Positions 5,041-59,494 of a stretch of 64,000 bases of DNA are shown one piece after another. The stretch lies in contig NC_134030.1 of the NCBI RefSeq assembly GCF_964204645.1, positions 16,492,110 to 16,556,109 of the forward strand. Direction: 5' to 3'. The position numbers and the translations under genes were made by a program. Every line of letters begins with the position of its first letter. The stretch's first letter is position 1. This DNA is from Tubulanus polymorphus (taxonomy: Eukaryota > Animalia > Nemertea). The notes beneath the pieces are model-generated. The model was not told where the DNA came from, ran no database searches, and saw only the letters and a program-made list of their open reading frames with translations.

Positions 5041-6080
5041 AATTTTCAAAATATAAATCCTTTCTGCTGTTATTGTAATAGATGGTATTATGGCGTCGAC
5101 TGTAAGCATTTCCTCATACAGTGCAAGCATAACACTCATAAAAACCAATATTGCAAACTTCTTCTGAAACTTGACAAAATCTCTTTGTTACCAAGTTGGA
5201 ATCAGTACTTATCGTATTATAAGGGTTTTTGCCGCTCCCGCAGAAACCCTGTTGTAATTATGCTGATTATTGTTAATATTATTAAAATCACGCGCTGGTA
5301 ACAGCGAACTAGGATGTAGAATCTATGCAGAAATCAATGCAGGAATCATCGTCCGTTGATAAAAGAACATCCTGATATGCCTACAAATAACTGTACGACC
5401 TTGAGCGTCAAATCAAGTGTGAAACACGGATTCAGACTAACAACAGTGCGCTTGCGACAATTCTCGGAATCTGATTCACATATCAGTGATTCAAAAATTT
5501 GCCATTTTGATGTCGCAAATTACGTTATCGGATTGATATTAGTCTCGATACCTCATTTCCCGCGAACTGTTTAATCCATCTGTGATTCAAAAAGCCACGT
5601 TTGGTACCACTACTATGACTTCTGTTTGGGGGATGAAATCAACATTACCTAAATCAAAGACGTTGATGCAGTTTATGTCACATCATGTTCGAATCCTGAC
5701 TATGCAAAAATTTTGTTACTGTAATTATGAAGGTAGATCAACCTATTATTAACGAAATCACGGATCAAAACACGCACGGAGAGCATGTGTGACATACAAG
5801 TTCATACAACTGCCTCAGGGGGATTTTGAAAGCACCATATATGCGGTTAAGTCGTTTTGACTAGACTTGATACAACAGTACTTTTTACGAGGGGACCTTT
5901 ATGGACCCACATATCCAGCATATTGTTGACCCAGGTTGGGCTTCTTGGAAATAGTCATGTTATGGACTTTTTAGAATTATTTCGATGAAATCTTTGTACG
6001 CTTCCTAGTGCAACATATGAAGCAGTTGGGCAGAAACCTGTTATCGCTGCAGCTATATTTTTATGATTTTCTTTTTTTAG

Positions 6081-39419: not shown

Positions 39420-40085
39420 AGCTTCCCTCAGTCATTCCAATTAATCGTTTGAAGTGTGGGGAGTTGCCTGGGGTCCTGAAACCACTGTCCATCCCTCACA
39501 AAACCTCTATGTCTACCTAAGGTTGTCCAAAACTTCCTAAGAACCCCTAGATAACGCTCCGTATTGACAGTGACTGTGCGTTGGTTCTCATCCTCAAACC
39601 AAAAGGGTTCGATTATCCTGTATTTGGACATAGCAACCCATGCTGTGCATTTGATGGAATGCAGTGGCCTTTGCAGACAGTTCTCAGGAGTTGATGTTCC
39701 CCACAAGATGTTGTTCTTTGATGTTGCATGTCCAGACAAAAGGAAGTGCGCCTCATCAGAGAACCAAACATCGATTTTGTCACAGAACAATCGACACATG
39801 ACTACACGCATATCCTTGTCCCTTTGCGCAAGTTTATGTTTAGTCTGTATCCTATAGGGGTACAAGTTCAGATCCTGCACACGACTTGCGAGGACTGCGA
39901 CCAGCCGACCCTTGGACAGCATCAAAATCGGCTGGTGATCGCGACCTCTTAGGCGACCAGAATGAGAGGCTCTGTTACCAGTAGCATTCAAGTTTAAGAC
40001 TGTCCCCTGGGCCCTGAATTTGTTGACCCGTCTGTACATGACCCTGTTTGCTGGATAATGACGACATCCGAATCGTCTTTTGAAC
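39420..40085 (-). pseudogene. mariner maT (DD37D-like) transposase fragment
   Basis: ORF 39428-40039: VNKFRAQGTV..LNLYPYRIQ..VWFSDEAHFLLSG..LHSIKCTAW..FWFED..TVNTERY..WFQD. Confidence 0.85.
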
Positions 40086-41534
40086 AGGAGATAAGTGAAA
40101 TGAATGCAAAATATACACCGATGAAAATATTACTCATTGGCCCTATCTGGCTCTAATATATTATGGTAATATACTCATTGGCCCTATCTGGCTCTGATAT
40201 ATTATGGTGTGAAGCAATGAAGATATCGAAAGTTGTTTAACCTTGGAGAGGTATATCGGTGACACTAGAAAGCCTATAGTATTCCTTGTGGGTTTTTACA
40301 TCATGTCCCAAGTGCCATGGCATCTCATGGCAATCATAATATTGAATGAGTAATCAAATAATTAGCTTCAATGAACTCTATTTTCGGGTACAGAAAAACA
40401 TGTGGTTCCCACATGCTGTCATCAGATCAAGAATTTATTGCTATGGTACAGCCAGGATAAAATATTCCTGTCAGCAACTACGATCTACGAAAATGACTAA
40501 CCAATGAATGACGGAATAACTTCAACTCGGATTTATTATTATTATTTAAGCACTAATTAACGAGTACCGGTTTGCTACAACACAAAAAACAACTACATTT
40601 AGCGGAAAATTGTGATAATTTGACAATTTACAATTCCAGCCATAGCGTAGTGCTGGCATACGTCGAATACGAGTGAGAGGTTAGAACTGTGCATTTACAG
40701 AAATGCCCAGAAAATGTATACAGATAGAAGTTCATGGTTTACCAAATCTATTTAATTCTACGTGAAGCGAAACGCGAAGAATTTGAGGAAAATACTGAAT
40801 ACAAATCCAACACTACTAATACACAACTCTTACAATACCGGTTAAGGAAACACAAATTCAACTTAATACACAGATTACAACATTCCAATTGCAACTAAAA
40901 CGCAATCATTTCAATGGCAACTCAAGGTTTGGTTGCGCATGTGTCCTGGGGCAATTAAAAGCCTTCATAGCATGTTAATTGACGGTGAGAGTCTCAGATT
41001 GAGTACACCCTAGATGCCACTGACTTGCACAAGACGTGCCTCCAAATACCAAAATTATATCTTGGCTGCACCATAATTAACAAACTAAAATTGGTCAATA
41101 AACAAAATTTTCAGTTTTTTGAGGCGACTAATATAATAGCATACATACCTGTGAAACAGTGGCAATGTACTTTCTGAGAGATGTCGAACATATCCTTTCT
41201 GGATGACTTATATCTGGACACGATGTCACGATTTCCTTCAGTTCTGAGCTTCCAGTAAATGGAGTTATCGCATTTGGCCGCTCAAACACATACATGTTTG
41301 CTTTCAGGATCTCCCTTTGACAGCATCTCCCTTTGCACTCAGCATATCTATAGACATGATTCTTCCATACGGCCGTCTTTGCAGGCCGTAACTGCAGGAA
41401 GTTGCGAATATTTTATCATACGACCATAGGCCTTTCTCCACAGGAGTCAACGGATGAAAGTTGACAAGATTCTACCATACGACCTTCTCTGCATGCGTCA
41501 ACAGATAGAAGGTTGAAAGATTCAATCATAAGAT
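39794..41534. repeat. Copy A of a ~1.75-kb direct duplication (copy B at 54495-56296)
   Basis: Colinear high identity with 54495-56296 (mariner piece, spacer, YR exon). Confidence 0.9.
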
Positions 41535-44329
41535 TTGTTGGATCCTCGGATTCGAATTGGGTGTGGGGGGCGTTGGCAATCCACGAACATAAGATAACGC
41601 GACTTGTAGTATAATGACGTAATGTATGTTTTCTCGATAATATTCAATACGACGACGACGACGAACCACTAAGACGGTTTAACACATTATGTTCCCAAGT
41701 CCCACGACCAGAGCTCAAAGAGAACGGTTTAACTGCCAGAAATGCTTTAATACAGCAATAGTCGCGCTTAAGTGCTTGGTGACCACCAAGGCGTGTATGG
41801 GCGGCCATTCCCGCCAAAAATCAGCTAAATTTGGCGGAAAATTGTGATAATTTGACAATTTACAATTCCAGCCATAGCGTAGTGCTGGCATACGTCGAAT
41901 ACGAGTGAGAGGTTAGAACTGTGCATTTACAGAAATGCCCAGAAAATGTATACAGATAGAAGTTCATGGTTTACCAAATCTATTTAATTCTACGTGAAGC
42001 GAAACGCGAAGAATTTGAGGAAAATACTGAATACAAATCCAACACTACTAATACACAACTCTTACAATACCGGTTAAGGAAACACAAATTCAACTTAATA
42101 CACAGATTACAACATTCCAATTGCAACTAAAACGCAATCATTTCAATGGCAACTCAAGGTTTGGTTGCGCATGTGTCCTGGGGCAATTAAGCGCATAATG
42201 TGCTTTTGAGATGCCTTCATAGCATGTTAATTGACGGTGAGAGTCTCAGATTGAGTACACCCTAGATGCCACTGACTTGCACAAGACGTGCCTCCAAATA
42301 CCAAAATTATATCTTGGCTGCACCATAATTAACAAACTAAAATTGGTCAATAAACAAAATTTTCAGTTTTTTGAGGCGACTAATATAATAGCATACATAC
42401 CTGTGAAACAGTGGCAATGTACTTTCTGAGAGATGTCGAACATATCCTTTCTGGATGACTTATATCTGGACACGATGTCACGATTTCCTTCAGTTCTGAG
42501 CTTCCAGTAAATGGAGTTATCGCATTTGGCCGCTCAAACACATACATGTTTGCTTTCAGGATCTCCCTTTGACAGCATCTCCCTTTGCACTCAGCATATC
42601 TATAGACATGATTCTTCCATACGGCCGTCTTTGCAGGCCGTAACTGCAGGAAGTTGAGAATATTTTATCATACGACCATAGGCCTTTCTCCACAGGAGTC
42701 AACGGATGAAAGTTGACAAGATTCTACCATACGACCTTCTCTGCATGCGTCAACAGATAGAAGGTTGAAAGATTCAATCATAAGATTTGTTGGATCCTCG
42801 GATTCGAATTGGGTGTGGGGGGCGTTGGCAATCCACGAACATAAGATAACGCGACTTGTAGTATAATGACGTAATGTATGTTTTCTCGATAATATTCAAT
42901 ACGACGACGACGACGAACCACTAAGACGGTTTAACACATTATGTTCCCAAGTCCCACGACCAGAGCTCAAAGAGAACGGTTTAACTGCCAGAAATGCTTT
43001 AATACAGCAATAGTCGCGCTTAAGTGCTTGGTGACCACCAAGGCGTGTATGGGCGGCCATTCCCGCCAAAAATCAGCTAAATTTAGCGGAAAATTGTGAT
43101 AATTTGACAATTTACAATTCCAGCCATAGCGTAGTGCTGGCATACGTCGAATACGAGTGAGAGGTTAGAACTGTGCATTTACAGAAATGCCCAGAAAATG
43201 TATACAGATAGAAGTTCATGGTTTACCAAATCTATTTAATTCTACGTGAAGCGAAACGCGAAGAATTTGAGGAAAATACTGAATACAAATCCAACACTAC
43301 TAATACACAACTCTTACAATACCGGTTAAGGAAACACAAATTCAACTTAATACACAGATTCCAACATTCCAATTGCAACTAAAACGCAATCATTTCAATG
43401 GCAACTCAAGGTTTGGTTGCGCATGTGTCCTGGGGCAATTAAACGCATAATGTGCTTTTGAGATGCCTTCATAGCATGTTAATTGACGGTGAGAGTCTCA
43501 GATTGAGTACACCCTAGATGCCACTGACTTGCACAAGACGTGCCTTCAAATACCAAAATTATATCTTGGCTGCACCATAATTAACAAACTAAAATTGGTC
43601 AATAAACAAAATTTTCAGTTTTTTGAGGCGACTAATATAATAGCATACATACCTGTGAAACAGTGGCAATGTACTTTCTGAGAGATGTCGAACATATCCT
43701 TTCTGGATGACTTATATCTGGACACGATGTCACGATTTCCTTCAGTTCTGAGCTTCCAGTAAATGGAGTTATCGCATTTGGCCGCTCAAACACATACATG
43801 TTTGCTTTCAGGATCTCCCTTTGACAGCATCTCCCTTTGCACTCAGCATATCTATAGACATGATTCTTCCATACGGCCGTCTTTGCAGGCCGTAACTGCA
43901 GGAAGTTGAGAATATTTTATCATACGACCATAGGCCTTTCTCCACAGGAGTCAACGGATGAAAGTTGACAAGATTCTACCATACGACCTTCTCTGCATGC
44001 GTCAACAGATAGAAGGTTGAAAGATTCAATCATAAGATTTGTTGGATCCTCGGATTCGAATTGGGTGTGGGGGGGCGTTGGCAATCCACGAACATAAGAT
44101 AACGCGACTTGTAGTATAATGACGTAATGTATATTTTCTCGATAATATTCAATACGACGACGACGACGAACCACTAAGACGGTTTAACACATTATGTTCC
44201 CAAGTCCCACGACCAGAGCTCAAAGAGAACGGTTTAACTGCCAGAAATGCTTTAATACAGCAATAGTCGCGCTTAAGTGCTTGGTGACCACCAAGGCGTG
44301 TATGGGCGGCCATTCCCGCCAAAAATCAG
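40597..44329. repeat. Tandem triplication of a ~1.25-kb unit (YR exon + BEL 5' internal/LTR piece + MITE start)
   Basis: Marker GCGGAAAATTGTGATAATTTG at ~40602, 41834 and 43086; units are nearly identical. Confidence 0.92.
41150..41450 (-). pseudogene. Crypton-type tyrosine recombinase exon, second family (repeated at ~42401, 43654, 55871)
   Basis: LTPVEK..KANMYVF..PNAITPFTGSSELKEIVTSCPDISHPERICSTSLRKYIATVSQ followed by a GTATGT donor. Confidence 0.75.
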
Positions 44330-45632
44330 CGTTTCGTCTATTTGTCTGTACTTTGACAAAATGTCATAGTACACCGCCAAAATGTGTAAGCGTAACGTCA
44401 AATTGTGTAATGCGGCTAAATAACATGGGGGGCGACACTGTACGGACAGTATTTTGCGGTATTTTTCTCGCTTTGCGATCATCTCACGGTCGTCTCATTG
44501 AAATAATTTTGCGAGTATCAAATCGACAAATCGTATCATATTCCCTAAACCCAATAAAATGAATTTATTATTACTTTTATTAGTTAACTCGGAACTCATG
44601 AACTCAAGATGTCGTCTCAGGTATGGAGGCCCTATATGGAAGCCCTGAGACGACACCTTGGGTTCATGAGTTCCCCAGTTCATAACTTCCAGAGTTTATG
44701 ATATTTCGAGTTTATTTGGGCATGTACAACACTATGAAATTATGCGACATAAAGAATCCTATTATAAGGATGTTAAATCCGATTACGTCATGAATTAACT
44801 AAAAAAATGATGTCCCGCATCAACCAAGACTGGTTGACTGTGCCCAATTCTGCACTGGCAGTCATATGAAGTCGACCGGCAACCAGTCTATCATCAGACA
44901 GCTTTCTTGATGGTTTATAGAAAATAAATAGATGTTTAAAAACTTCTCATAACGAGCGTTTGTTATCTTTTTCATCATTAAAACCCGAGCAGATTCATCG
45001 AGAGTCACCGGTTATTCGGAGTCACCCTTCTCTCTAGCCCGCGCACAGAAAATCCGAGCTACCTACCAGAGGAGGAACGGAGGCGCCCTTCAACATACCA
45101 TTAATCGCTGGTTATTCAGTGTCGTCTGAGCCTGAGACGCGGGTCTTTGATAGAGCATCGTGTTTACATTCGACGTTTCGGTATCGCAGGCTTTTTTCAT
45201 TAGACGAACTCATGAACTTGAGAACTCAGGAAGTTATGAACTCGGAACTCATGAACTCAAGATGTCGTCTCAGGGCTTCCATAGGTTTACGGCAAAGTAT
45301 TTACTTCCGCTATTTTACCGTACATTATTACTATATATTATAGTATTAACTAACTAAAGTAACAATAAAATCATTTTATTGGGTTTAGGGAATATGATAC
45401 GATTTGTCGATTTGATACTCGCAAAATTATTTCAATAAAACGACCTTGAGATGATCGCAATGCGAGAAAAAAAACGCAAAATACTGTCCGTACAGTGTCG
45501 CCCCCTGTGTTATTTAGCCGCAATACACAATTTGACGTTACGCTAACACATTTTGGCGGTGTACTATGACATTTTGTCAAAGTACAGAAAAATAGACGGA
45601 ACGCAGATTTTTGGCGGGAATGGCCACCCATA
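44301..45632. mobile_element. Unclassified long-TIR (~270 bp) non-autonomous DNA element, 6-bp TSD GGCGTG
   Basis: GGCGTG|TATGGGCGGCCATTCCCGCC ... GGCGGGAATGGCCACCCATA|GGCGTG; arms 44301-44575 and 45360-45632. Confidence 0.8.
44635..45283. mobile_element. Nested MITE with TATGGAAGCCCTGAGACGACA termini
   Basis: Inverted ~50-bp ends; an extra copy of the right end lies at 44586-44620. Confidence 0.7.
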
Positions 45633-48600
45633 GGCGTGAGCCAACGATAATAATATAATAACGGTATAGAAATATATATCTATTAAGCTATTGATCCCTA
45701 AAAATCAGCTCGTACATCCCCCCCCCTCCAAACGAACGTAAAGGACGTTTAAACTAATTACGTCGTAATACATAATAAATCGAAACTAATAAACTAAACG
45801 AATGAGCAATACCAACTAATACTAGATATGATCAACTTACTAACGATTTCCAATAATTATTTAAGATCTATAAGATTTTACCTAAGTGCTAATTGGCTTA
45901 ACTAAGTTTTAGCTTACACTAGGAACTCCGTAAATATAATACATACAATAGTTTCTGTTTCCTTCCATAGAACGTCAAAGTCAAGTGATCATATTCAACG
46001 GAACGAATCAGAGTTCTTATAAACCCAGTTATGTCGAGTCACATTCTAACAAAACGCACTTGTTTATCGGACGGTCGATTGTAGATTTCGCCGTTTTTAT
46101 GGTCACTCGTCTAACGATGTCATCTGTACCAGGCAAGATGGCAATTATTCGACCCAATGGCCATTCGCTACGATGAACACGATCATCGACGACCAGCACC
46201 AGATCGCCGATTTTAATGTTTCTTCGCTTCTTACACCATTTTTGTCTCTCTTGCAACATAGGCAAATATTCTCGAGCATATCGGATCCAGAACTGGTCGG
46301 CCAAATACTGCACGTGCCTCCAGCTTCGACGGCAGTATTGATCGGTTTTCTCGAACTTCCCTGGTGGCAGCCCAGGGCCGGATCTAAGGAGCAGAAGGTG
46401 GTTCGGAGTCAGTGCATGCAAATCGTTGGGATCATCGCTCACAGGAGTCAGTGGTCTTGAATTCATGATTGCTTCAGCCTCACAAATGAATGTACGCAGA
46501 CCTTCGTCGTTCAATATCTGTTGCCGTAGAGTTACGTTCAGGATTTTTCTTATAGAACGGATGCACCTTGCCCATACTCCTCCCCAATGGGATGCAGATG
46601 GAGGGTTGAAAATCCACTGAGTCCCCTTTTGCATGAGACATTCGTGTATCTTGGCCTGATTCCAACTTTCCACTGCATCACGCAACTCTCGTTCACCGCC
46701 TGTGAAGTTGGTGCCATTGTCGCTTCTTATTATCTCTGGTTGTCCTCTTCTTGCAATAAACCGTCGTTGAGCGTTGATAAACGAGGGGGTCGATAAATCA
46801 TCCGTGACCTCGATATGTACCGCCCTTATATTAAGACATGTGAAGACGCAACCATACCGTTTCACTATAACACGACCTCGTTTTGCGTTGTATGGACCAA
46901 ACAAATCGACGCCTACGTTAGTAAACGGCGGCTCGGATAAATTGGTACGATCCACCGGTAGGTCAGCCATCATCTGGGACTCTGGTTTACCATGGTTCTT
47001 CTTGCAATCGACGCATCTTCCCAGTACATGTCGAACGGCTGAATTACCATTTATTTACCAATATTTCGTTCTCAGCATTGCGAGTGTAAACTGGCGACCA
47101 CCATGCGCCCAAATCAGATGATAATATTCGATGATCAACTTGGTAACGTGACAGTTCTTCGGTAGAATGATAGGGTATTTCCTAGCGTCGTCTATGGAAG
47201 ATTTCCTCAGCCGTCCACCGACTCGTAATATATATATAATATACCATCAACCATCATAGGATTCAGCTTTCGAATTCTACTCGACTTCTTAACATCACGT
47301 TTTCCACCTTCGGAACTGAATGAGACGACGTCGGGTAACCTCTCAACTTCGTCAGGAAAATGCCATTTTTGAATTATCTTCAGTATAGACTTCTCGGCAC
47401 TTCTCATCTCCAGTACACTAATTGGTTCTGAGGACTGTAATTTATTCACGTACCGCAGCATCCAGGTAACACATTTCGTCAGTCGATACCATGATGAACA
47501 TCTCTTAAACGCGGCGTGGAAACAATCGTCTTCTACGTCAGGTTGCAACCCGCTGTTTTTTACTCTGCCATTTTTCAGGACTAATGTAGTTTTCTTCACT
47601 TCAACGTCATCGTCTGGAACAGGGTGGACTTGAGATGACCGTGGCCATTCGGCATCGGGTTTCCTCAAAAATTCGGGACCATGTTTCCAAACTTCATTCT
47701 TCATGAATGCGTCGACTTTCTGACCACGTGATGCATCATCGGCTGGGTTAGATTTCCCATCTATGAATCTCCATTGTTCTGGTTCAATACGACTTCGATA
47801 TCGGTACATCAAGTTCTCTTCTCAGCATCTTGTCGTTTTTAACGGACAGCGTGGCTGCAGCTAAAACGAGGAATAGTCGTAGTCTTAATAGTCGGAGCTA
47901 CTCTAGCTTTTCTCATCAAAAATATGGGCTTTCTTCTGCGATCTCAAGGCGTATGTAGCTTACCGATGCGTAACCGACCTCGAAAGCATCCGTGAAGTGG
48001 TGTAGTTGAGCATCTATAACGTCTCCGAATCCCATTGGTTTCAAACATCTATCCATTGTATAACCGTACAACTTGGGCAGGGAGATCAACCATTCATTCC
48101 ATTGAACCAGTTTTTCTTCAGGTAAGTTATCGTCCCATCCCAATTTAAGCTTGACCAATGACTGCATCAGAATCTTTGAAACGAGTATTACTGGCGCTGC
48201 AAAACCAAGGGGGTCGTATAGTGCGCTTGTTACGGACAGAATACCTCTTCTCGTCGCCGGTTGATCACCGGGGGTCACACGGAACCCAAACGTATCTTTC
48301 TCCATATTCCATAATACGCCTAGTGCCCTGTCGACTGGTAACTCTTCAAAGCACATGTTCTTTACCGGAGGTGCCCTCTCTTCTTCCGGAATGGCCTCTA
48401 TCACCTTCTTTGAATTTGAAGCGAATTTGGTTATATGGAAACCACCCATCTGGAGTAGTTTTATGACGTTCAATGCCAATTCTTTGCAACATTCGTCGGT
48501 CTTCACGGATTTCAGCATGTCGTCGACATAGAAATTCTTCATTATAGTATCGGTAACCTGCGGGTCGAACGAACCTTCATTATCGGTAGCTGTTTTTCTC

Positions 48601-50754
48601 AATACAAAGTTACAGCAGCTAGGAGGTGCACTTTCATGTGATATTCATCAGCCGTTTTCCAAAATCATCAGTAGACCACCATAAGAACCTCAAGGCATCG
48701 CGTTGTTCAGGGATCACTCTCACCTGATGAAACATTGATTCTACATCAGCAACCAACACAATGGGTTCTTGCCTAAATCCCACCAATATACCAATTAAGG
48801 TGTTTGTCATATCGGGACCATGATACAACTGTTCGTTCAGCGATACACCATTATACGTAGCTGAGCAATCGAAGACGACTCTAAGTTTCTTCTTCTGCGG
48901 GTGATACACTGGGTGGTGCGGCAAATACAATAGCAAACCATCGGTGTTGACTTCTTCAGGCGGTACCATTTCAGCAAAGTCGCAGACTAAAAGATCTTCG
49001 ATAAATTTTCTATATCCAGTTCGACGCTCTACATTCTCGCGAAATCCTGGCATCAATGGTTTCAGTCTTGATTCGGCCATCTTACGATTATTAGGCGGAC
49101 ACGGAGGTGACACCTTAAATGGAAGTGCCATTTCATAATGGCCGCCTTTCAAACTCACGGTACCTTCCATTATAGCCAACACCTTCTTATCATTTACCCA
49201 AATCATCTGCTGATCATCTCCGACGTCCCCAAATTCTCGGTTGAAGTAATACAGCAGTCGTTTGTCCAATGAATCATCAATATTTACCGCATTACTGCTA
49301 CGGATGGGTCTTCTACCATTCTTACCAAGGGGCCCCGTTGACGGCCCATCCGAACATTGTTCGGACAGCATATGGACCATTTCTCACGGCTGGCTTCACC
49401 TACATAGGTTCCATTGCTCTACAGTTATCGTTACCAATTAACAGCTCTACGTTAACATCATATTTGGTATGAAGACGCCATCGAAATGAGACCATTTCTT
49501 AACTTCGCTTTGAGACAGAATATCTTCTCTGGTAACAGGAATATCGGGCGTCGAGAAGACCATAGGCAATTCCAATTTCTCCATCTCATCAACATCGCTT
49601 ATCAACAACTTAGTTACCATGGTTCCTGCGTTGTCGGAATGACCCATTGTCAAGAAATAGTGGTTTTCCGAGTGTTGGCGTTCAGCTTATTCATCAACTG
49701 TGTAGTACAAAACGTCGCTGTAGAACCAGTGTCCAAAAGAGCATATACCAATTGAAGTTCACCATTTTCAAATGCTCTTACCAATACTGGAACGATCGGC
49801 ATACTTATCTTCTCCTTTTGACTAGTCTTGGTTATAGAACCATTTTTCACCTTTTCGGGGTTATGCAATGACGAGTGATGTGCGCCATTACAGATGTTGC
49901 ATTTACTTCGAGGTTTCCAACATTCTCTAGACCGATGCCTAGGGAGGAAGCAATTAAAGCATAGGGCTTTATCTCTCACGAATTTCACCTTCTCTTCATA
50001 GGTAAATCTACTGAAACCACTACAATTTACCAGCAAGTGCTCGTTACTGCAATGTGGACATCTCAACGGTTTCTTAGTCGCTGGTGGTAGATTTACGGTC
50101 GTTTCTGACGATGGACCAACTATTTCTTCCGATTGGCGCGTGATGAATGTCTTCCCCTTTTTATCTGCATATTTGTGATCCTTGATATCAGAGATATCGC
50201 CGAAAACGGTGTGTTGCTATTCTGGCTTCTTTCTCTACAAACTCCGCAATATCGCCAAAGTTGACATCCCGTTGCTGCTTTTCATTAATCGTATCAGCTA
50301 TGCTGCGCCAACGTTTCCTCAGGTCGTAGGGCAGGCGATTCACTACCTTTCGTAGAGAATCTGGGTTTTCGATCTTATTAAGATAGCCAACTGCCTTTAA
50401 CGCATTTCCACAACTGGTCAACTTTATGGAAAACTTCTTCAAACCATTCCTATCTTCCGATCTAAAGGCTGGGCCCTTGGTAATTTCGTCGACGTATGCT
50501 GTAGCAATTCGATAGTTCTGACCATAACGCTTCTTCGGTGCATCTTTAGCTTCTAAGTATGCCGAATCATCACTTCGAGTTAAATAACTTCTTACCAACT
50601 CTTTCACTTCGCCAGACGTGTACTGAGCAAGATAATACATCCTCGACGTATTACTTGACGTTCTTGTTTCGATCAGCTGTTCGAATGCCTTAATAAACGA
50701 TATATACTGCAATGCGTTACCACCAAATATTTGAAAGGCTGAATCCAAGAACAT

Positions 50755-53640
50755 GTCTATCGCACTTTTGAGCCCAAATGTCTACTTTTACTTAGTAGCC
50801 ACTTGAGAACAATAAGCAATTAACGATATCAGCTACTTTTCCAGTAGTATACATTTCAAAACAGTCACTCTGAAATAGTATTCCTTTCAATTCGGTTGCT
50901 TTTCTATAGTGGCTGTTTCGAAGAGTCTACTATTGAAAAGTGACCATTTTGAAACATCTGGTTTCGATAGTGCACACTAGCAGTAGAGGTGACTGTAAAA
51001 CCACCCGCCTGTTAACAGTGACTGTGTGATAGTAACTCCTACCATAGCAGCTACTCTCAAAACACATCGTTTCTAAAAGTCAACTATTGAAAAGTGACCA
51101 TTTTGAGATCGCTTGCTAGATTCCCTGTTATAAATACATGGTAGCAACATATGCTTCAAATTTGCAGTGATACGTGACAATATAAACATACGGAAAACTC
51201 TACTCACGCTATAGTTTGGGGTATAGTTCCATTAAGAGTGACTCAGTTAAGATCCGAAGATATTGTAGATACTCTTTGAGGATGTGAAATGTAATGAGCG
51301 ATTCCCAACTCTAACCAATAAAAGTCGAGATTGGAATTAAATTTGTTTACAAATTGTCAATAGTTATGTAGTTTTAAGATAAATCTCCTTCTTTCCTTCT
51401 TCTCATGAATTCATTTTGAACAAATGCTGCTATTTTCAAGCATAGGTCTGCATTTATTTTTGATTTAAATTCTTAGATTAAAAGCACAATCATGAATTCA
51501 GGCTAACCTATCATTATTGAAATGGTGGTTTATTTTCAACGGGGGCCTGGATGTCTTTGCATCTTGAATTAAGATGTGCATTTCAGAGTGTTTGAATTTC
51601 CCTGAATTCTAATTTCGCAAAATCATTGATTTTTTTAAAACAAAATATGCTTTTTCCATGTGGATTTTAAAAATTCTAAGAGAGCCCATATTTGGTCGAA
51701 TTTAATAGAAGAAAATTTGTATGGTATTCAAGATATCATTTGGATTACCTTAACAGCCTTTGGTGATCGTCCCTGGGGTCATGAGTGAAGAAATCCCGTA
51801 ATAGAATTTTAAATATGATAAAATTTGTTAAGGTGAAACAGCAACGTTTCGACTGTTGACTAACAGCCATCAGCGGGTGGAATGTAGGCATTCCTAGTGA
51901 AAAGAGCTTTTAGTCAGATGGCTGTCAGTCAACAGCCGAAACGTTGTGGTTCAACTTTAATAAATTTCATGATACAAAATTCTATTGTGGGATTGCTTCA
52001 TTTATCTACAGTTAACACGGTTTAGAGTATTTTATTCGACTTCTTCGGGTCCTGTAGCCGTTTAGATCGAAAATTATTTACTTTTCGGCACAGAAGGGAT
52101 ATACAACGGAGTTTGTCGCTATGAGAGGGATTCCCTGTATATCTGCACCTTAAAGCGGTACCCTTTTTGGTTCTAGCCCGCATTCGCTTCCAAATTCAAG
52201 TATTGGTAACTTTGGTTTACGATAATTTGAGAAAAAGAGTTTAGTTGGAGAAAACTGACGATTATCTTATAATTCAGCGATTCATTGGTTCATCGATTCG
52301 TAAAAATAAAATAAAATCTCATAGAGATATTGCGGTGCTAAGTTTATTACTATTAAGAGAGGTAATTACTTTTGGTTCGTGGTCTTTAGGTGGTTAGTGC
52401 AGTTAGTTCATTCGTTCATCAATCACTGTCTAGTTAGCCAATGTAATTGACCTGCTGACCGATAGCTGCTGCTGAGTTTTTGATAACCTATATAAACAAT
52501 TTACTCAGCAAAGTAGGAAAGTATGTGAAACTGAAATTACAGCCCATCACATTTCTTTCACTACTTAAGCCAAACGAAGTTTTCTCTATCAAATGAAATT
52601 GCTGATTTCAAAATTACGTGAACATCTCAACACTCAACTCTTATACGCTAATCCTTTGATCTTTCATAATAGTTGGTTATTTCATTTCAACCAAACTATA
52701 TAACTACGAAATAAGATTTTGATTAGGGTATCACTTCTAGCAAGCGATAAAACGATATTCAAGAACGAACAAGCAGAGGATGTGTGACAAAGTGAACATC
52801 ACATGGATTACTTAAAACTCGTTTGTATCGAAATAAACAATAAATTCAAGGTTAATTCTAAGTATTTTAGATACATTTTTTTCGTAATTCATTTTCTGAA
52901 CATATGATTTTATTTGTATATTCCTCTCTCATATACCCTTAAAATCAAATTAAGCCTAAAAGACAAATTTATTTTTTGTCTTTCTTTTCTACAAAATCAA
53001 AGATTTATGAACGCACCAGAATGTTTTATAATCGCAAATCTTAAAATTCTAAAAATTCTAGGAGTGGCACTATATTTTCGTATTAATGGATTTAATCCAT
53101 GATGATATAATTTAGGGGATTCTCAGCAACTCAAAAACTTAGATTTTCTATTCACAGAACTGTATTCAAAGCATATAGAGTTCTGTATACAAAGCAGATA
53201 GGGTTTAACAGTACCTTTGAACCTGTCACGTATCACTGCAAATCTTTAACAGATGCTGCTATTTTGAACAGGAAATTACCGTGCCATCTCAAAATGGTCA
53301 CTTTTCAATAGTTGACTTTTAGAAACGATGTGTTTTGAGAGTAGCTTTTATGATAAGAGTTACTATCACAAAGTCACTGTTGACAGACGGGTGGTTTTAC
53401 AGTCACCTCTACTGCTAGTGTGCACTATCGAAACCAGATGTTTTAAAATGGTCACTTTTCAATAGTAGACTCTTCGAAACAGCCACTATAGAAAACCAAC
53501 CGACTTGAAAGGAATACTACTTCAGAGTGACTGTTTTGAAATGTATACTACTTGAAAAGTAGCTGATATCGTTAATTGCTTATTGTTCTCAAGTGGCTAC
53601 TAAGTAAAAGTAGACATTTGGGCTCAAAAGTGCGATAGAC
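50755..53640. mobile_element. Foldback-type DNA element with ~425-bp TIRs inserted in BEL gag
   Basis: GTCTATCGCACTTTTGAGCCC... (50755-51180) is inverted against 53224-53640. Confidence 0.85.
51785..52002. mobile_element. Inverted pair of Penelope-like element termini with degenerate hammerhead-ribozyme cores
   Basis: Minus strand CTGATGGCTGTTAGTCAACAGTCGAAACGTTG and plus strand CAGATGGCTGTCAGTCAACAGCCGAAACGTTG, in ~90-bp inverted arms with an AATAAA tail. Confidence 0.6.
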
Positions 53641-54494
53641 ATGTTCTTGGATTCAGCCTTTCAAATATTTGGTGGTAACGCATTGCAGTATATATCGTTT
53701 ATTAAGGCATTCGAACAGCTGATCGAAACAAGAACGTCAAGTAATACGTCGAGGATGTAGACATGTTCTTTGATTCAGCCTCTCATTTGCACTTCAGGTC
53801 TTGGAAGAGTCAGTGAATTCGAGGTTGCTTCCATGCAATGGAGTTGGTAACTCATTTGAAGCTGTTGAGTCTTCAGCAAATTATAGATTGCTTCATCGTT
53901 GGTATTGGCTATCCGATTCACCTCATCGGTGTCGTTTCTCTCAATCTTCGATGGCTGCCAAGCTGGTGCCTCTGGATCGAGGCCGACGCCTTTAACGTCG
54001 TACCTATTGTAGATATCTTCTTTCGGACAACTGTGTGCGAAGCTTCAGTTGTTGTTCTTCAATTCTGAGTCTTTCTTCCTCTTGCTTCAATACCAATCTT
54101 CGTTATGACAATTGTCTCTCGATCTCTAGAGCAGCAAGTTTTGCTTCTAAACCCTTTTTTCGGGCGGATTCTTCGATCAGCTTCACTTTGACGCCACTAT
54201 TCTAACTGCTCTTACTATGGCTACTGCTTGTATGACTGACTGAGTCGTGAGGTGTGACGAAATCCTGGCGTAAGTCTGCTATCCATCTTTCGGCTCTTCT
54301 GCTGAATAATGAGTAAGCTTCCTCTTCTTTCTCGTAGTATGTTTCGGACAGGTCCTTGTCTTCGTCGCTCTTTAGCAATGAGACGTACACATTCGTAATT
54401 CGGCTGGTTCGTCTTCAGTTGGATTGCCCTCCCCATTCGACGTTATATTGCTACCAGTGTTAAACAATGTTGGATCCTCGGATTCAACATCACT

Positions 54495-56296
54495 ACACAT
54501 CACTACACGCATATCATTGTCCCTTTGCGCAACTTTATGTTTAGTCACTATCCTATAGGGGTACAAGTTCAGATCCTGCACACGACTGCGACCAGCTGAC
54601 CCTTGGACAGCATCAAAATTGGCTGGTGATCGCGACCTCTTAGGCGACCAGAATGAGAGGCTCTGTTACCAGTAGCATTCAAGTTTAAGACTGTCCCCTG
54701 GGCCCTGAATTTGTTGACCCATCTGTACATGACTCTGTTTGCTGGATAATGACGACATCCGAATCGTCTTTTGAACAGGAGATAAGTGAAATGAATGCAA
54801 AATATACACCGATGAAAATATACTCATTGGCCCTATCTGGCTATATTATGGTGTGAAGCAATGAAGACATCGAAAGTTGTTTCACCTTGGAGAGGTATAT
54901 CGGTGGCATTAGAAAGCCTATAGTATTCCTTGTGGGTTTTTACATCATGTCTCAAGTGCCATGGCATCTCAAATGAAGTCAATCATAATATTGAATGAGT
55001 AATCAAATAATTAGCTTCAATGAACTCTATTTTTCGGGTACAGAAAAACATGTGGTTCCCACATGCTGTCATCGGATCAAGAATTTATTGCTATGGTACA
55101 GCCAGGATAAAACATTCCTGTCAGCAACTACGATCTACGAAAATGACTAAACAGGATAAAACATTCCTGTCAGCAACTACGATCTACGAAAATGACTAAA
55201 CAATGAATGACGGAATAACTTCAACTCGGATTTATTATTATTATTTAGGCACTAATTAACGAGTACCGGTTTGTTACAACACAAAAAACTAAATTTACAA
55301 CTAAATTTAGCGGAAAATTGTGATAATTTGTGATAATAACGCCATAGCGTAGTGCTGGCATACGTCGAATACGAGTGAGAGGTTAGAACTGTGCATTTAC
55401 AGAAATGCCCAGAAAATGTATACAGATAGAAGTTCATGGATTACCAAATCTATTTAATTCTACGTGAAGCGAAACGCGAAGAATTTAAGGAAAATACTGA
55501 ATACAAATCCAACACTACTAATACACAACTCTTACAATACCGGTTAAGGAAACACAAATTCAACTTAATACACAGATTCCAACATTCCAATTGCAACTAA
55601 AACGCAATCATTTCAATGGCAACTCAAGGTTTGGTTGCGCATGTGTCCTGGGGCAATTAAACGCATAATGTGCTTTTGACATGCCTTCATAGCATGTTAA
55701 TCGACGGTGAGAGTCTCAGATTGAGTACACCCTAGATGCCACTGACTTGCACAAGACATGCCTCCAAATGCCAAAACTTATATATTGGCTGCGCCATAAT
55801 TAACAAACTAAAATTGGTCAATAAACAAAATTTTCAGTTTTTTGAGGCGACTAATATTATGCATACATACCTGTGAAACAGTGGCAATGTACTTTCTGAG
55901 AGATGTCGAACATATCCTTTCTGGATGACTTATATCTGGACACGATGTCACGATTTCCTTCAGTTCTGAGCTTCCAGTAAATGGAGTAATCGCATTTGGC
56001 CGCGCAAACACATACATGTTTGCTTTCAGGATCCTGACAGCATCTCCCTTTGCATTCAACATATCTATAGACATGATTCTTCCATACGACCGTCTTTGCA
56101 GGCCGTAACTGCAGGAAGTTGAGAAGATCATACGACCATAGGACTTTCTCCACAGGAGTCAACGGATGAAAGTTGACAAGATTCTACCCTAGGACTTTCT
56201 CCACAGGAGTCAACGGATGAAAGTTGACAAGATTTGACCGTACGACCTTCTCTGCATGCGTCAACAGGTAGAAGGTTGGAAGATTCAATCATAAGA
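54495..56296. repeat. Copy B of the ~1.75-kb direct duplication
   Basis: Matches 39794-41534, with small private tandem duplications (~48 bp at ~55100-55200 and ~50 bp at ~56140-56235). Confidence 0.9.
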
Positions 56297-56672
56297 CTGT
56301 TGTTGCAGGACTCACCTGCGGGAGTTTAAGAAGATTCTATCATGCAACTGTTTAATGCGGAAGTTTTCTTGGAATAAACCACCGCGGTTATTATTATATT
56401 TTGTGATCCTGAAAATCCAATGGAAATATGAGTATAAATCTTTAATTGCAGAATGGGATTATTTGATGAAATACAAAGTCAGAATGACCCAGCTAGGCCT
56501 GAGCAAGACCTTGATGACTCTGGCTCCACCTACAAACCCAATCTAGCAACGATTCATCTGATAGGAGGATCCAGGTACTTGGGCTCTGACAACGGATAGA
56601 TGCCAGATTGCCAAGAAAACAAACTTCGTAATTAGTGTCATCATTAAGTATCTAGGCAAACGTAGTCGTTTA

Positions 56673-57064
56673 TTGACTTTAAGATTCTATGAGAACAAAG
56701 CTTTCTCAGACCATAGTAACTAGGCTTGGGAGTCATAAATGGTACAAAGAGAAACATATATTTGAAAAGCTATATTTTTGCAGATCAAATCTATGTCTCC
56801 CATGACATAGTTATTCCTAAAATGAAACTGCCAAATCAAGAAAGTACGTTTTGTAAAAATGAATAATATTGGTTTGCTATACATAGATTTGATCTGCATA
56901 AATATAGCTTTTCAAATATTAGATTTACATTTTTGAAAAATAACATTTTAAAAATCATTTCCTATCTAAGATTATTTTCATTTTTCTCTTTGTACCATTT
57001 ATGACTGCCAAGCCTAGTTAATCTGGTCTGAGAAAGCATTGTTCTCATAGTATCTTAAAGTCAA
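56673..57064. mobile_element. Palindromic MITE
   Basis: TTGACTTTAAGATTCTATGAGAACAAAGCTTTCTCAGACC... is inverted against ...GGTCTGAGAAAGCATTGTTCTCATAGTATCTTAAAGTCAA. Confidence 0.8.
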
Positions 57065-59494
57065 CAAACTACCTCCAAATTAGCTTTCAGATCACTAATA
57101 TGCTTGGCTACTTGTTTCGAAAGACTGTCATCCGGAGTCAGTGATGTGTCGATGGAAAGAGGAATTTCTTTACCAAAAAGAATGTGAAACGGAGGGATTC
57201 CTGTGGATTCGGACGGTGATGACCTGATAGCCATCATTACGCTCGGGAGTATGTCAGCCCAATTCGACTGGTCTTGGTTAATGTAGCATCTGAATATCTG
57301 GCCTAATGTCCTATTTTGCCTCTCTACAGTAGCATTGGTCTGGGGATGATAGCTTGATGTGGTAGAGCGAGTTACCTGAAAGAGTTCGCATATGGAAGAA
57401 ACCAGAGAATTCAAAAATAATCGATCCCGATCAGATACTAAGGATCGAGGCGCGCCGTATCTTGAGAAGATGTCATTATAGAGAACTTAGACCAACTCGG
57501 AAGCTTCCTGCGACTATAATGCAAAACCCTCACACCATCTAGAACAACTATCCACGAGTAAGAAAAAATTGAAAGAGTGGAAAATCTTTGTATTTCTGAA
57601 AATCTTTATAGAGAAGACCATCGTGAATGTGGAAATTCTCAGCCTGAAAATTGTTGGCCAAATGTTTATCCACAGGCAGTCGACGGGTTTCCAAGAAATC
57701 AATCATGGGGGAAACATTCATCACAGTCTCGTTGCGCAGTTTCGAGATCTGCGTCTTGAACAGGTAATACTGTGGTCAAGGCACTTGGCTCATCACACGC
57801 GTAAGTGAATTCCACTTCCAACGTCTTTGCAGGCGAAGTCGCTGCAACGTCGAAAGGAGTGGGAAAATCCTCATGATCATTGTCATCCGTAGTTTCGGGG
57901 TAAACTCGTCGAGAAACACCATCAGCATTTGTTTTTTTCGTACCTGGACGATGTACAATTTTAAGATCGTAGCCCTGTAATTAAGCTGCCTAACGGCCTA
58001 CGCGACTATTTGTGTCCTTAACCTTATGAATATATGACAGGGACTAATGATCAGTGTAGATTGTGAAATGTTTAGCAGCTAAATATTCCCTATAAGCGTC
58101 GATACCTACAACAATAGCAAAACATTCTTTATCTCAAGTATCCCATCGACGTTGTGACTGAGATAGGGATTTACCACCATAACAGATTTCTCGTGACCCT
58201 CGTTATCAGTCTGCGCTAAAATGTACGAAATTGCCGAATCGGAGGCATCGGTACAAAGAAGGAATTCTTTTTTATAATCCGGATACGATAAAATGGGGGG
58301 AGAAATCAAATGTTGTTCAAGGTGTTGTTGGTGTCGGTCCAAACAAATTCCTGGTTTTTCTCAAGGAGACATGTTTTGTTTCGAAGCAATATTAGCACAA
58401 GATTTGACGAAACGCCTGTAAAATCCAGAAACTCCAAGGAAAGCACGAAGATCCCGCTGATTTTTTGGAATAGGAAAGTTTTTGATGACTTCACCTTCGC
58501 AGGGTCCGCCTCGACTCCACTTTTTGAAAAAATATAACCAAGATAGGGAACCTTGTCCATAGAAAATTTACACTTTGATGGTTTCAGTGTCATGTTAGCG
58601 ATGCGCAGTCTGTCAAAAACCATCCTCAACTGCCAAAAAATGGTCCTCGAATGATTTAGAATAAATGAGAATATCATCAATGTACACCAAACAGAATAGC
58701 CAATTGTAACCTCTTAAAACCTCATTCGTGGTCATTTGGAAACTAACAGGACTGTTTTTCAAACCGAAGGGAAGGCGTTTGAACATGTATGCACCGAATT
58801 GGGTAACAAACGTGCTTTTATGTGCTGTGTGAGGGTCCAAACCAATTTGCCAAAAGCAGAGAGTCATATCGAGGGTTGAGAAATACGCTGCACGAGCCTC
58901 TCCGATGGAATCAATTATATCCGTAATTTTTGGTAGCGGAAAAGCCGTGGGTTTGGTCAGTCTATTCAGGGCACGGTAGTCCACTGCAAAGCGGTATTCG
59001 CCTGATTTCTTTTTTACCATAATAACCGGTGATTGAAATGGTGAGTTAGATTGGGTAATGATATCAGCCTTTAACATTTCATCGACCTGTCTATCTTGCT
59101 CAACCCGAATGTGAGGGGGTTGACGATAAGGTCTCTGGGCACAAGGCGGTTTGTCGCCGGTGTCTATAGTATGGGTATACATGTTGGTAGAACCCAGTTC
59201 AGACAGGTTCGTTGAAAACCTATATCTATATTCTGTCAATAGCGTATGGAGAGCTTGCCGTTGGTCGTCAGTCAAGTCCACGTCTGACAAATCGAAATTT
59301 ATGGGATCAGGATTAGAACCTGGTCCATCAGATTCCGGGGCAAACTTTGCTATGTTCCCGATATCGTGTTCTGGCAAAGTAGCGCCGGCCACTGACGTGT
59401 GGCCTATGTCATCTGAAAGGCTGACTATCGGGGTGGACTCATCTAAATGTGATAAATTTGCCAGTACCATACCTCTGGGTATATAAGCCGACAA
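57065..59494 (-). mobile_element. Ty3/Gypsy pol relic (RT, RNase H, integrase)
   Basis: SPFQSPVIMVKKKSGEYRFAVDYRALN, FSTLDM..FWQI, LPFGLKNSP, VYIDDILI; LCTDASDSAI; YGAPRSLVSDRD, TSSYHPQTNATVERQNRT; frameshifted. Confidence 0.9.

Follow-up and report, generated by a model that had tools for sequence, protein, structure and literature searches.

A BEL/Pao retrotransposon of Tubulanus polymorphus with one complete end, one truncated end and a 1.75-kb duplication of flanking host DNA

In a window of 64,000 nucleotides from the genome of the nemertean Tubulanus polymorphus (contig NC_134030.1; G000:C6:16492110-16556109, with all coordinates below being positions in the window), a long terminal repeat (LTR) retrotransposon of the BEL/Pao group lies on the minus strand at 44040-54485, as recognized from its Pfam domains and reverse transcriptase (RT) motifs. 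Insertions of this group are expected to show two LTRs and a target-site duplication (TSD) of 4-6 bp. The copy described here is a member of BEL/Pao by descent that was inserted non-canonically: it is without a 5-bp TSD, one of its junctions was made by repair and contains a short filler, and a 1.75-kb duplication of the host flank arose alongside it. We propose that this configuration probably results from the non-concerted or ‘one-ended’ insertion of a linear BEL/Pao complementary DNA (cDNA) in one event. A preliminary description of the locus had instead presented a circularly permuted element captured from a circle with a single LTR; its notion of a non-canonical insertion with a flank duplication stands, whereas the permutation does not.

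The element and the limits of its LTR

Read on the minus strand, the domains follow the order gag, protease, RT and integrase, with BEL/Pao-type domains throughout, as is expected of this group. The BEL leader and the N-terminal region of gag (53786-54467), which are in broken frames and run into the 5' LTR in relatives, precede a gag and protease region (49653-50727), in which DUF1759 (50191-50727) and a weak match to an aspartic protease (49653-50216) occupy separate frames. The region of the RT and the ‘Peptidase_A17’ domain (47919-49383) is divided between two frames, with RT motifs visible in the pieces at 48637-49383 and 47919-48644; the downstream piece contains the YVDD motif, and the Pfam match to Peptidase_A17 likewise lies at 47919-48644. 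The integrase region (46032-47246) combines rve and DUF5641 (46032-47054) with a weak Pfam match to the integrase zinc domain (H2C2; 47058-47246) in a different frame. Directly upstream of the 3' LTR in the sense of the element, a run of purines at 45717-45729 adjoins the LTR end at 45716 and constitutes the polypurine tract (PPT). Thus, both the identification of a BEL element, on the strength of DUF1759, Peptidase_A17, rve and DUF5641 on the minus strand, and the placement of the PPT beside the LTR are borne out. The coding region is broken into at least six frame pieces, the internal region is effectively single-copy in the 268-Mb genome (77 contigs) that we compared, and the element is an old, dead and degenerate copy.

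The permutation previously proposed fails because it depends on an LTR boundary at 44195: the only LTR had been placed at 44195-45716, and 44040-44194 had been taken for 5' internal sequence. Our conclusions on the boundary are based on reference-only alignments of the family copies; a separate BLAST query of the LTR consisted of three joined, short non-coding stretches of the window (590 bases) that skip a nested transposon. In these alignments, the LTR block opens exactly at TGTTGG in the copies L003, L004, L005 and L007, and L002 keeps this start in a diverged, duplicated form. The sequence directly before TGTTGG is unrelated DNA in L004 and L005, an ambiguous flank in L003, the BEL leader at 54468 and in L007, and duplicated host DNA at 44040. 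Beyond the ...TACA end (45716), there is unrelated DNA in L007, L016, L005 and L002, and the PPT in the window. Moreover, L005 is a solo LTR (TGTTGG...TTTCA) with the 5-bp TSD TACCC on both sides. Since unrelated flanks abut both termini and the solo LTR has a 5-bp TSD, the 3' LTR is assigned to 44040-45716 on the minus strand, with both ends complete (TGT...ACA), and the stretch 44040-44194 is LTR as judged from the family copies and the solo LTR. Most of what had been described as the LTR is a nested terminal inverted repeat (TIR) transposon with a 6-bp TSD (44301-45632), which interrupts the 3' LTR. The LTR proper accordingly amounts to about 339 bp (44040-44300 and 45639-45716), and near 44185 it is without the approximately 240-285 bp of middle sequence seen in L007, L004 and L003.

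An 18-mer had been reported at both 44040-44057 and 54468-54485, and it is present at both positions. Judged from the aligned copies, it is the terminus of the LTR and not part of the leader. Its occurrence at 54468-54485 (minus strand) is then a 5' LTR stump, which keeps only the inner 18 of about 339 bp and is identical to the 3' LTR start at 18 of 18 positions. On these boundaries the element reads as colinear, namely 3' LTR, PPT, integrase through gag, leader and 18-bp 5' LTR stump, an order that calls for neither a circle nor a tandem donor. The supposed point of permutation is the LTR terminus itself, and no unique internal sequence lies on both sides of the LTR. It had also been suggested that an intact family member be used to verify the permutation point, and in L007 (C3) and L002 (C7) the sequence corresponding to 54396-54479 indeed continues with that from 44044 onward, in a match ending at about 45716; this contiguity cannot separate the readings because any intact leader runs into its 5' LTR. 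The tandem, LTR-sharing donor that had been envisaged is absent from the genome, as is a second copy of the internal region.

Two of the family copies show peculiarities of their own. On the minus strand of L002 (C7), positions 5440-5520 contain two LTR starts resembling the 18-mer, with a spacing of about 31 bp, after which a large part of the LTR interior is deleted, making this a second rearranged LTR start within the same small family. The LTR of L007 contains a nested repeat of about 250-285 bp (L007:5764-6048; C3:21115763-21116047), which has at least 30 copies in the genome at about 80% identity and is probably a short interspersed nuclear element (SINE) or a miniature inverted-repeat transposable element (MITE).

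The duplicated host segment and the two junctions

The host segment immediately to the left of the element, here termed A (39794-41535), recurs to its right as A' (54495-56305), in agreement with the preliminary description. The two form a direct repeat of about 1.75 kb with an aligned identity of 95.8%, a Kimura two-parameter (K2P) distance of 0.044 and 14 indels; therefore, they are old and genuinely separate copies. Segment A is a mosaic of older repeats ending in a 51-bp satellite, rather than an independent element, and it stops at the insertion point inside that satellite. A' continues unbroken into the native satellite, with the 51-bp period and the ACTGTT motif carrying on to the right of 56305, and hence the passage from A' into the right flank is the native arrangement. 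On the opposite side, a paralogue on contig C2 extends 25 bp past the left edge of A, and because it crosses this edge, the latter is a breakpoint and not the end of an element. With both outer flanks being native, only two novel junctions have to be explained. The satellite itself, seen in the window at 41353-41535 and 56070-56370, also forms a multi-kilobase array on contig C4 (16925600-16931500).

At the left junction, A is directly followed by TGTTGG, the terminus common to the family copies, with the native host sequence being AAGACT/GTTGTT and the observed one AAGATT/TGTTGG. The earlier statement that the outer ends are without TG..CA does not apply to this left end, which starts with the canonical terminus. 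At the right junction, a 9-nt filler, AACATCACT (54486-54494), lies between the LTR stump and A'. Eight of its nine bases repeat 54497-54504, but the filler could alternatively be copied, with divergence, from the 8 nt just before A. No short TSD is found at the junctions of the element, as had been noted previously, and the junction sequences match those quoted at the time.

A one-ended insertion and its alternatives

The locus thus displays the features of a one-ended insertion: the complete end abuts host DNA, the other end is truncated and accompanied by filler, and a 1.75-kb direct duplication of host sequence replaces the TSD. In the mechanism that we consider probable, the intact U5 terminus of the 3' LTR would first have joined the host inside the 51-bp satellite, at the end of A, either through the action of integrase on that end alone or by end joining. 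The other (U3) end would have stayed unintegrated and been trimmed to 18 bp of the 5' LTR. The free 3'-OH of this truncated end, on the plus strand of the window, would then have primed 1.75 kb upstream on the host, with the 9-nt filler arising by slippage, and its extension would have copied A rightwards to the insertion point and beyond. Finally, homology with the right flank would have resolved the intermediate into the arrangement host-A-element-A'-host, devoid of a 5-bp TSD. The polarity fits the model published for aberrant retroviral integration (PMC5041404), because a free 3'-OH on the plus strand that is extended from the start of A yields A' and then the native right flank.

Several points weigh against this proposal. 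The left junction is ambiguous, in that its sequence may represent a single substitution and no overlap, or else 5 nt of overlap (TGTTG) plus an additional base; as such it would be compatible with integrase and end joining alike. The truncated end is without clear microhomology at its junction. No convincing tRNA-complementary primer-binding site (PBS) was found by the LTR stump or at 44195-44217, with the candidate TGG runs being either unconserved in relatives or oddly spaced; the main text of a review of BEL/Pao elements contains neither TSD nor PBS data (PMC3118150). The case is a single locus judged from the assembly alone, and a normal integration followed by a later break in the 5' LTR yields the same end product.

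This last course of events, although unlikely in our estimation, deserves the most serious consideration among the alternatives. The element would first have inserted canonically, by integrase, at the end of A, generating a 5-bp TSD. Its 5' LTR would later have been broken and then repaired on an empty homologue or sister chromatid; the left end would have primed at the start of A and copied A together with the native right flank, so that the TSD and the remainder of the LTR were deleted. Such a two-step history yields exactly the sequence observed, by the same steps of polymerase extension and recombination, in a family that does generate 5-bp TSDs and at a locus that is duplication-prone, as its tandem triplication (see below) attests. 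However, it requires two independent events, which nothing in the sequence demands, and the second of these must begin copying 1.75 kb upstream and finish in register with the right flank.

An assembly artefact, whereby two haplotypes of A or collapsed and expanded repeats were joined in tandem around a heterozygous insertion, appears quite improbable. Assemblies often go wrong at flanks that are duplicated and at tandem arrays of nearly identical units, but between A and A' there is 4.4% divergence with 14 indels, the right junction offers an assembler no overlapping sequence to use, the sequence is free of Ns, the three tandem units have private differences, and no alternative haplotig of A occurs among the 77 contigs. 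We hold it to be highly improbable that the element inserted into the junction of an older A-A' tandem duplication or, as a variant, that a larger composite element has A and A' as its LTRs. While the direct repeats do bracket the element, in the former case it must have hit a single junction base in about 3.5 kb. The composite is rejected in view of the composition of A from older repeats, its want of TG..CA ends and of a TSD, and the paralogues and satellite that cross both of its outer edges. We also rejected a tandem duplication of A together with the element and a subsequent precise loss of the second element, exact excision being unlikely. The least probable of all is the capture by template switching of a one-LTR circle or an LTR-sharing tandem array, for although an LTR, an internal region and the first 18 bp of an LTR formally equal one turn plus 18 bp, and junctions with filler and without a TSD would suit it, copying must have started exactly at the LTR terminus, which is an end in linear cDNA but not in a circle, the supposed internal sequence beyond the LTR is itself LTR, and a donor array or second internal region is missing from the genome. 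The one-ended insertion of linear cDNA hence remains the reading that we favor.

Later transposon insertions and the tandem triplication

Three further features of the locus, two TIR elements and a tandem triplication, had no place in the preliminary description. TIR element 1, the non-autonomous 1.33-kb transposon nested in the LTR (44301-45632), has the termini TATGGG...CCCATA and is flanked by the 6-bp TSD GGCGTG (44295-44300 and 45633-45638). Its arms are inverted over about 290 bp at 94% in the window copy and over about 400 bp at about 85% against other copies. The family comprises more than 20 genomic copies at 96-98% identity, four of which were observed with 6-bp TSDs, and the empty site of the window copy is visible in the relatives L002 and L007. 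The family is young and has long inverted arms, and other copies (the family includes L012, L013 and L014) hold about 115 bp more in the middle. A TSD of 6 bp is typical of IS3EU or Dada transposons.

TIR element 2 (50728-53785; about 3 kb), likewise multicopy, lies inside gag at the 5' end of the DUF1759 region. Its family unit measures 2.94 kb with arms of about 450 bp; L007 is uninterrupted across its site, and a TSD was sought for it but none was resolved. Like TIR element 1, it is 96-98% identical to its own family. Its right end is rearranged: 53595-53759 is an inverted copy, 100% identical, of 50636-50800, made up of the last 73 bp of the left arm and 92 bp of BEL flank (53669-53759 being the inverted copy of the BEL flank at 50636-50727), and a second, older TIR tip of about 30 bp lies beyond it at 53757-53785. 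The structure resembles a palindrome that was enlarged through template switching or through conversion across the arms.

The junction of A with the LTR lies in a tandem triplication of a 1252-bp unit (40583-44330), the units of which start at 40583, 41815 and 43067. Each unit begins about 950 bp before the end of A, crosses the junction and the adjoining 261 bp of the LTR, and stops 30 bp into TIR element 1. Because the triplication spans the junction, the 18-mer of the LTR terminus occurs four times in the window (at 41536, 42788, 44040 and 54468; 0.01 chance matches expected). The units differ from each other at about eight sites, that is, by a few tenths of a percent, with the first having a private 20-bp deletion, and all three are equidistant from A' (94.5-94.7%). 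From its sequence, the triplication looks real, recent and later than all else at the locus. The order of events would thus have been, first, the insertion and the duplication together, for which the 4.4% that separates A from A' provides a date; second, the decay of the reading frames and the insertion of the two TIR elements; and third, the triplication of the junction unit.

The surroundings of the duplicated segment contain further traces of mobile DNA. A 203-amino-acid open frame (39428-40039, minus strand) that spans the left edge of A is without a Pfam match and has weak features of a Tc1-like transposase N-terminus (protein-atlas features, 0.89), which we regard as a lead only. A small MITE-like element is suggested at 56668-57069, immediately beyond A', by inverted repeats measuring 90 bp and 39 bp, and a separate RT open reading frame (RVT_1, E 6e-23) lies on the minus strand at 58613-59494, 2.3 kb to the right of A', in keeping with a region rich in transposable elements.

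Significance and relation to known aberrant insertions

We incline, if only somewhat, to the view that the locus is a natural, germline-fixed case of one-ended retroelement integration in an invertebrate-type genome. If this is true, a pathway familiar from cell culture, where integration had been crippled, acts in the wild too and with BEL/Pao elements, and it can make kilobase-scale tandem segmental duplications with the element as a spacer. Should such events recur, they would be a small but real source of segmental duplication that software for finding LTR elements, expecting two LTRs and a short TSD, would miss or misread. More modestly, the locus offers a clean natural example of an already known kind of aberrant, repair-assisted insertion of an LTR element. 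The failure of the claimed genomic capture of a retrotransposon circle prevents a false lead, and it carries two lessons of method: the limits of LTRs are best set from solo LTRs and TSDs rather than from TG..CA motifs alone, and nested TIR elements need to be removed before the architecture of an element is read.

With canonical BEL/Pao insertions, as exemplified by the solo LTR L005, the element shares the LTR termini TGT...ACA, the PPT, the order gag-protease-RT-integrase and the BEL/Pao-specific domains; it departs from them in having no 5-bp TSD, a 5' LTR cut to 18 bp and a 1.75-kb host duplication. One-LTR circles and LTR-sharing arrays resemble it in having one full LTR with LTR sequence recurring at the far end, but here the order is not permuted, the start is exactly at the LTR terminus and there is no array. 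A study of CRISPR-induced breaks in mouse zygotes describes the capture of retrotransposon cDNA at double-strand breaks (PMC4516963). The use of retroelement DNA as filler in host repair is a common theme; however, such captures are usually of fragments with both ends arbitrary, whereas the present case has an exact cDNA terminus at one end and a nearly whole element.

A further parallel is provided by the retrotransposon Tf1, which undergoes integrase-independent insertion by Rad52 single-strand annealing, in nature too, with truncations of the 5' LTR (PMC11042837). The absence of a TSD and the one intact LTR end are shared, and truncation of the other LTR has been proposed for Tf1. Events of the Tf1 type show flank homology to the PBS or the PPT, or land at resident elements and form tandems. 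In contrast, the host flank beside the U5 end in our case shows no match to what comes after the 5' LTR, and no resident element is present at the site; all that is seen in place of flank homology to the PBS or PPT is a possible overlap of 5 nt with the tip of the LTR, one base out of register.

In searching the literature, we found no natural LTR elements with kilobase-scale flank duplications. The aberrant integrations of avian sarcoma-leukosis virus (ASLV) and human immunodeficiency virus type 1 (HIV-1) described by the Hughes laboratory, in which integrase inserts just one of the two ends, were obtained with ASLV vectors having one defective end, and with HIV-1 when integrase inhibitors were suboptimal or the integrase was resistant (PMC5041404). 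One end of these proviruses is normal and its counterpart is ‘often truncated’, and the host sequence is ‘most commonly’ present as a duplication that is ‘hundreds or thousands of bp long’ (PMC5041404). In the model offered for them, the viral 3' end that failed to integrate is lengthened by a host polymerase, with host DNA close by as the template; homologous recombination then produces either a duplication to one side or a deletion to the opposite side (PMC5041404). Those events concern vertebrate retroviruses in cultured cells, whereas ours is a germline-fixed BEL/Pao fossil, in which a role of integrase at the good joint would be by analogy. Nevertheless, the two share one normal end and one truncated end, a kilobase-scale host duplication in place of the usual 4-6 bp, a short extra sequence at the aberrant joint, and a polarity that fits an extended 3' end.

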